From: Scyliorhinus canicula
Lineage: Eukaryota
Direction: 5' to 3'
Length of the DNA: 64,000 nucleotides
Assembly (NCBI RefSeq): GCF_902713615.1
Contig: NC_052149.1
Coordinates: 36,848,327 to 36,912,326, forward strand
Shown piece by piece: positions 16,093 to 16,382 of the stretch. Under the pieces are notes generated by a model. That model was given only the letters and a program-made list of their open reading frames with translations, had not been told where the DNA came from and ran no database searches. The translations under genes were made by a program, and so were the position numbers. How positions within the stretch are numbered: the stretch's first letter is position 1; the number at the start of each line of letters is the position of its first letter.

Positions 16093-16106
16093 TCAATTTG
16101 CTTGAA

Positions 16107-16291
16107 ATGAAATGAAAATGAAAATCGCTTATTGTCACGAGTAGGCTTCAAATGAAGTTACTCTGAAAAGCCCCTAGTCGCCACATTCCGGCGCCTGTTC
16201 AGGGAGGCTGTTACGGGAATCGAACCGTGCTGCTGGCTTGCCTTGGTCTGCTTTCAAAGCCAGTGATCAGCCCAGTGAGCTAAACAGCCCC
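16107..16291 (-). mobile_element. Short tRNA-derived SINE overlapping the TTC4 stop codon
   Basis: Homologous to 2353-2541; TSD CTTGAA (+ strand) at 16101-16106 and 16291-16296. Confidence 0.88.
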
Positions 16292-16382
16292 TTGAAGTTT
16301 CTTTCCGGATAAAAAGTCTTGAAAGAACGATGAACCTCTAACCAGAACGAGGATTCTTGGATTGCCAGCCTTCACAACATAT
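16280..16382 (-). CDS. TTC4: TTC4 exon 10 (YVVKAGNPRILVLVRGSSFFQDFLSGKKLQGAV*)
   Basis: TGTGTCTAG| acceptor; resembles the human C-terminus YFVKALTPAFLVCVGSSPFCKNFLRGRK; TAG at 16282-16280. Confidence 0.88.

Follow-up and report, generated by a model that had tools for sequence, protein, structure and literature searches.

How does the coding sequence of a conserved Hsp90 co-chaperone come to end inside a SINE? The question is raised by 64,000 nucleotides of the genome of Scyliorhinus canicula, referred to here as the window, in which the terminal codons of TTC4 lie in a tRNA-derived element. The evidence makes it very likely that the insertion of this SINE supplied the last three residues and the stop codon of TTC4, in the lineage of the window and after its split from Scyliorhinus torazame.

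TTC4 is encoded by ten coding exons on the minus strand, from 33284 to 16280, all of which align to TTC4 proteins. The C-terminal part matches human TTC4 (PDB 6hfo_A) with an E value of 1.8e-42, and the closest relative, protein P0273, carries the TPR_1 and Wheel domains (PF18972, 83.7 bits) of the TTC4/Cns1 family; the 33-residue exon 10, searched alone, gave no Pfam match. The RNA data for S. canicula came from four runs in three studies: two raw runs primed with oligo-dT, and two sets of contigs. The joints 16382/17497, 17579/20544 and 20623/21178 all show GT..AG borders on the minus strand, and the first of these is present in four runs. They delimit the penultimate exons:

20544..20625, minus strand: TTC4 exon 8, joints 17579/20544 and 20623(+2)/21178(+2)
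17497..17579, minus strand: TTC4 exon 9, joints 16382/17497 and 17579/20544

The neighbourhood follows a PARS2-TTC4-DUF4149 order that is also found in Rhincodon. Upstream of TTC4 and on the same strand, a single-exon open reading frame of 470 codons (45749-47158, minus) encodes a PARS2-like prolyl-tRNA synthetase of mitochondrial type, with a class II core and an anticodon-binding domain. Downstream, a converging gene has a DUF4149 (TMEM205-like) exon at 9232-9501 on the plus strand (Pfam E value 1.4e-10) and probably a further exon at about 7750-7960 (plus). Mustelus, Carcharodon, Rhincodon, Hemiscyllium and Rhinoraja likewise have a DUF4149 gene next after TTC4. Elsewhere in the window, a C-rich unit of 26 bp is repeated in tandem over 4 kb (50246-54222; about 152 copies, 95% match), with flanking arrays at 49800-50476 and 53974-54400. 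The array is free of stops in several frames on both strands, and the longest of the resulting open reading frames reaches 1341 codons; these frames, rich in Pro on the plus strand and in Gly on the minus strand, are surely not genes.

Exon 10 starts at 16382, preceded by a TCTAG acceptor, and the minus strand from 16382 to 16280 reads ..TAT GTT GTG AAG .. AAG AAA CTT CAA GGG GCT GTT TAG, with the present stop codon at 16282-16280. Exon and element are arranged as follows:

16280..16382, minus strand: TTC4 exon 10, present translation (R)YVVKAGNPRILVLVRGSSFFQDFLSGKKLQGAV and TAG stop, from translation, RNA joint and alignment to human TTC4 (PDB 6hfo_A)
16292..16296, minus strand: target-site duplication, 5' copy, TTCAA(G) (TTCAAG at 16296-16291), from sequence; a single copy stands at the empty sites of relatives
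16280..16291, minus strand: SINE-derived codons GGG GCT GTT TAG (G, A, V, stop); the corresponding ends in relatives are AN, VN, AI or EN
16101..16291, minus strand: sense-oriented tRNA-derived SINE, counted together with the 3' target-site duplication, from similarity to copies at 2353 and 39301
16205..16289, minus strand: tRNA-like SINE head, with acceptor stem GGCTGTT/AACAGCC, A-box-like TAGCTCACTGG and B box GGTTCGATTCC, from Rfam RF00005
16177..16195, minus strand: conserved core common to two SINE families with different heads, from a core search of the window
16101..16106, minus strand: target-site duplication, 3' copy, TTCAAG, from sequence; a single copy stands at the empty sites of relatives
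16093..16101, minus strand: GCA AAT TGA (A, N, stop), the end of the ancestral coding sequence, no longer translated; SINE removal gives KLQAN and stop, matching the KKLQAN ending of five shark species
16087..16092, minus strand: AATAAA polyadenylation signal abutting the ancestral stop codon, from sequence; Rhincodon has TGAAATAATAAA at the same place

The SINE measures 191 nt and is flanked by the duplication TTCAA(G); the G at 16291 may be assigned equally to the target or to the element. Directly behind the 3' TTCAAG copy stands CAAATTGAAATAAAG, which contains the old TGA (16095-16093) and the AATAAA (16092-16087), giving the overall layout ..AAACTTCAA/G(SINE..TTCAAG)CAAATTGAAATAAAG. When the SINE and one copy of the duplication are deleted in silico, the reading frame closes as KLQAN and stop. 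The preliminary description had reported the same terminal codons and had recognized the head of a sense-oriented tRNA-derived SINE with a TTCAA(G) duplication; the minus-strand sequence, the duplication at both flanks and an Rfam tRNA match agree with it.

The transcripts follow this structure. Splicing of exon 9 to exon 10 at 17497/16382 is seen, and reads run on into the SINE head: at 16274, 28 reads have the TTC4 orientation and 3 the opposite one, a strand bias which indicates that TTC4 transcripts continue past exon 10 into SINE sequence. Further inside the element, reads are equal on both strands and derive from all copies; depth over the element is 260-630, against 4-13 in exon bins. 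Across the four RNA runs the exon 9 donor formed no joint other than that to 16382; likewise, none of these runs shows a joint that skips 16101-16291. SINE sequence lies within the predicted coding part of the dominant transcript and relatives that lack it end differently, as befits a transposon-derived C-terminus. In exon 10 the RNA reads also vary at 16320, where a plus-strand C in place of T turns the Gln codon CAA within ..FFQDFL.. into the Arg codon CGA. The variant is carried by 4/8 and 12/23 reads in two runs and therefore looks heterozygous. At this site Mustelus, Carcharodon, Pristiophorus, Heterodontus and Heptranchias have R, and S. torazame, Rhincodon and Hemiscyllium have K.

The element has the attributes of a tRNA-derived SINE: a tRNA head with A and B boxes, a short, non-coding and multi-copy body, and a target-site duplication opposite an empty orthologous site. 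Rfam model RF00005 (tRNA) matches 16205-16289 on the minus strand with 32.8 bits (gathering score 29, E value 2.5e-5). Measured against the established consensuses, the B box GGTTCGATTCC is intact and fits, and the A-box-like TAGCTCACTGG deviates at one base. The tail consists of CATTT-like repeats followed by TTCAAG. The window contains two full copies and one truncated copy of this tRNA-headed family: 16291-16101 is 86.5% identical to the copy at 2353-2534 over 185 nt (E value 2e-55) and 93% identical to the 5'-truncated copy at 39301-39415, upstream of which 39223-39300 holds yet another, different sequence. Six occurrences of the 19-nt core GGCGCCGGAATGTGGCGAC were counted in the window, against an expectation of 0. 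The core is present in a second SINE family at 8735-8930 (plus), 30304-30500 (plus) and 37260-37463 (minus), whose head reads ..TGCACGTTCTCCCC.TGTCTGCGTGGGTTTCC... A literal search of the literature for the core sequence returned no relevant paper. A tRNA-Cys(aca)-like sequence detected by ARAGORN at 38146-38217 (minus) sits inside a repeat whose translation, ..PGLIPAPGHC..GVCTFSP.., recurs across the window, and it is on this account probably the head of yet another SINE family.

The copy at 2353 begins GGGGCTGGTTTAGC, and the TTC4 head is one G shorter. Both points had been made in the preliminary description, together with an estimate that the extra G would add about nine codons; with that G the frame would run for 12 residues after Q to a TGA, which is nine codons beyond the GAV ending. 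Here lies the alternative that survives best. The element would have arrived with the longer head GGGGCTGGTTTAG, appending 12 residues, and a later deletion of one nucleotide would have been selected, shortening the tail to GAV and stop. Its appeal is that the sole other full-length copy in the window does have the extra G, and that an extra base is found at 16284 in 10/31 and 8/49 reads. The geometry of the head tells against it. The short form is the one with canonical layout, a 7-bp acceptor stem, then UA, then the D stem, and it scores 32.8 bits as a tRNA compared with 18.3 bits for the copy at 2353. The stem GGCTGTT/AACAGCC forms 7 Watson-Crick pairs, where the copy at 2353 has GGCTGGT/ACCAGTC: the difference in the 5' strand is matched by one in the 3' strand 75 nt away (A, versus C at 2353), and by virtue of this matching change the short head keeps all 7 pairs. 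Paired stem changes are expected in an active, transcribed source element and not in a dead copy within an untranslated region.

The wider family agrees. Among hundreds of SINE reads, and in contig depth, the 3' stem partner at 16211 is A (in gene sense) at a frequency of roughly 32-57%; since this variant makes up roughly a third to a half of a depth far above that of TTC4 itself, it marks a subfamily. The copy at 2353, only 86.5% identical, looks the more decayed of the two. There was also nothing to rescue: the three frames of the SINE head stop after 3, 7 or 12 residues, so that translation would end within 4-13 codons whatever the frame, and selection for a shorter tail is unnecessary. 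The extra-base reads at 16284 most likely come from other SINE copies and not from the TTC4 locus. Reads with the neighbouring variants at 16268 and 16274 carry at least two further differences each. Contig depth at 16284 was considered as evidence of other short-head copies and dropped, as long-head contigs would be clipped exactly there. All told, the later deletion is improbable, and the compensatory event envisaged in the preliminary description finds no support; we infer that the source element passed on its short head, which was not made after insertion.

A second alternative holds that the SINE is a rare allele of the reference individual, or an artefact of its assembly, and that most animals make a protein ending in KKLQAN. 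The element is indeed seen in one assembly only, and the reads that bear on it come from four runs only. These reads nevertheless originate from three studies, enter the SINE head in TTC4 orientation and include no skipping joint. An empty allele in S. canicula would join ..CTTCAAG straight to CAAATTGA. The 71-nt stretch across the boundary of exon and SINE (16255-16325) was sampled with two 31-mers, both of which are found in 20 runs, all from the same species and spread over 9 studies dated 2011-2023. As 30 of the 41 possible words span the junction, the chance that at least one sampled word does so is about 93%, leaving about 7% for neither. Junction words in 20 runs, combined with RNA joints and reads into the SINE, disfavour an artefact or a rare allele, which we regard as very unlikely; presence/absence polymorphism with the SINE as the rare form is likewise argued against.

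With the junction words present in many samples of S. canicula, the origin of the insertion can be traced through the TTC4 proteins of other cartilaginous fishes. A representative search with exon 7 found no chondrichthyan representative, a homologue search from a teleost TTC4 representative returned teleosts only, and exons 8-10, joined into 88 residues, yielded no candidate within the length range allowed. A profile built from stickleback protein P0233 and ten rows of window exons, in a deliberately loose alignment, retrieved 16 chondrichthyan TTC4 proteins; in simulations, well-aligned hybrid profiles ranked teleosts above sharks, whereas the loose alignment of P0233 and exons ranked shark-like sequences first. 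The C-termini are:

Scyliorhinus torazame (two independent assemblies, P0273 and P0283): ..FLSGKKLQAN
Mustelus asterias, Carcharodon, Pristiophorus, Heterodontus: ..FLSGKKLQAN
Heptranchias: LQVN
Rhincodon: LQAI
Hemiscyllium: LQVS
Hemitrygon, Rhinoraja, skate-like mRNA (P0284): GKNLQEN
Mobula: GKNLQN
Narcine (low-quality model): GKNLQENKLV
Callorhinchus (chimaera): KKLQQAS
Window (S. canicula): KKLQGAV

None of the 15 chondrichthyan proteins compared, from sharks, rays and a chimaera, ends in GAV, and the KKLQAN end that had been predicted by removing the SINE is the exact C-terminus of five shark species: S. torazame, Mustelus, Carcharodon, Pristiophorus and Heterodontus. At the DNA level, a single TTCAA(G) marks the orthologous site in Rhincodon, Heptranchias, Rhinoraja and the skate-like mRNA, and the SINE is absent from all four. 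With the slash at the point of insertion, the empty site reads ..AAGCTCCAA/GCCATTTGAAATAATAAAG in Rhincodon (CAA/GCCATTTGAAATAATAAAG), ..AAACTTCAA/GTAAATTGAG in Heptranchias (also given as AAACTTCAA/GTAAATTGA) and ..AATCTTCAA/GAAAATTAAAA in Rhinoraja and the skate-like mRNA (CAA/GAAAATTAA); the window has GCAAATTGAAATAAAG behind the SINE. For S. torazame, Mustelus, Carcharodon and Hemiscyllium, absence of the element is deduced from annotated proteins. Empty orthologous sites and the C-termini of relatives identify the insertion as a gain in the lineage of the window. That the SINE was instead ancestral and was precisely lost elsewhere is scarcely conceivable: precise SINE excision is very rare, 15 chondrichthyan proteins including that of a probable congener lack the element, three genomic empty sites retain a single TTCAA(G), the family is missing from the TTC4 loci of Rhincodon, Heptranchias and Rhinoraja, and no point was found in its favour.

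To judge from its annotated proteins, S. torazame lacks the element, and the gain would be younger than the split from that species, whose TTC4 exons are roughly 87-96% identical to those of the window. The published elasmobranch rate leads to implausible ages (PMC5499810), and the differences among SINE copies may predate the insertion. Neither the tRNA-headed SINE nor its core has a copy in the TTC4 loci of Rhincodon, Heptranchias and Rhinoraja (25-27 kb each), and the skate-like mRNA has no copy of the SINE either; the six core-bearing copies in the 64-kb window, set against none in these loci, suggest that the family may have expanded mainly in the lineage of the window.

The course of events can be proposed as follows. 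In the lineage of the window species, after the split from S. torazame, a tRNA-derived SINE very probably entered the final coding exon of TTC4 by retrotransposition, in the sense direction, landing between a Gln codon and the final Ala-Asn-stop and duplicating TTCAA(G). Translation would since have passed from exon 10 into the SINE head, through Gly-Ala-Val to a TAG inside the tRNA-like sequence, turning the protein end from ..KKLQAN into ..KKLQGAV, one residue longer; this GAV end is a prediction from DNA and RNA. Behind the SINE there now stand the former last codons with their stop and the AATAAA that abuts it. The 3' untranslated region, once a few tens of nucleotides long, would have lengthened to about 210 nt, nearly all contributed by the SINE.

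Such an insertion into the coding sequence of a conserved co-chaperone was held to be tolerated in the preliminary description, and this view is strongly supported by the RNA joints, the 15 chondrichthyan C-termini and the three empty sites. Tolerance is understandable because the change affects the variable tail only, the new stop lies in the last exon and every frame of the SINE head stops within 13 codons. The tail in question would lie beyond the Cns1/TTC4 Wheel domain: in P0273 the Pfam Wheel match ends at residue 379 of 393, and after FLSGKK both length and sequence vary across vertebrates. The effect on the protein is most likely neutral or nearly so, as far as sequence comparison can tell.

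About 190 nt of SINE separate the present stop from the old polyadenylation signal. The old stop touches this signal in the window (TGAAATAAA) and in Rhincodon (TGAAATAATAAA, at about 22331-22342 of locus L001), and from this direct abutment the ancestral 3' untranslated region must have been extremely short. The abutment is absent in Heptranchias and the skates, and the skate-like mRNA has an untranslated region of about 1.7 kb. Read depth falls from about 9-19 over coding exon 10 to 1.3 and 2.9 in the first bin downstream. These values fit about 25 nt of untranslated region past 16096, and on that basis the old AATAAA is probably still in use; binned read depth would place the mRNA end probably near 16070. 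A bolder and unlikely proposal is that the untranslated region formed by this SINE with its conserved core has become a new surface for post-transcriptional control of TTC4 in the lineage of the window, and that an extra-G allele, with a tail 12 residues longer, still segregates. Such an allele would explain the 16-32% of reads with the extra base at 16284.

The locus is unusually clean, with a SINE inside conserved single-copy coding sequence that has been retained while the ancestral end is still legible behind it, and with a pre-insertion state predicted from the sequence and confirmed letter for letter by related species. It shows how such insertions survive: a variable tail, a last exon and an element with stops in every frame. 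The insertion could in addition serve as a presence/absence marker for the relationships of catshark-like species.

Among known elements, SacSINE1 and the Deu-SINE family of cartilaginous fishes (Nishihara 2006, as cited in PMC5499810) are tRNA-headed SINEs with a conserved central domain. The Deu-SINE superfamily is characterized by the Deu highly conserved domain in its centre and by a 3' tail homologous to an L2-type LINE. The TTC4 element, which may belong here, likewise combines a tRNA-related head with a conserved core and a short repetitive tail of CATTT-like units in a chondrichthyan genome, and its core is common to a second family with a different head, as expected for a highly conserved domain. 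SacSINE1 is reported in Rhincodon, whereas the TTC4 element has no copy in the TTC4 loci of Rhincodon, Heptranchias and Rhinoraja.

The closest parallels for the event itself are found in Alu elements, whose takeover of existing 3' exons in main coding transcripts is documented: in ZNF433 an Alu changes one C-terminal residue, in ZNF394 it adds eight residues and in ZNF101 it adds 49 bp and a stop (PMC6924539). As in TTC4, a few terminal residues are replaced or extended and the stop codon comes from the element. The two situations differ in that the TTC4 element is a tRNA-derived shark SINE and Alu is 7SL-derived, and in that the host gene, for an Hsp90 co-chaperone, is single-copy and conserved across a wide range, where the Alu hosts are fast-evolving zinc-finger paralogues; unlike in the Alu cases, the ancestral stop and polyadenylation signal stand intact right behind the element. 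Alu exonization through intronic cryptic splice sites likewise brings SINE sequence into a coding mRNA, whereas TTC4 has gained neither a splice site nor an exon: the SINE was inserted directly into a coding exon and is read through in sense. The TTC4 case calls for no new mechanism; it adds a clean instance to an already known route of gene change, comparable to the C-terminal takeovers by Alu.
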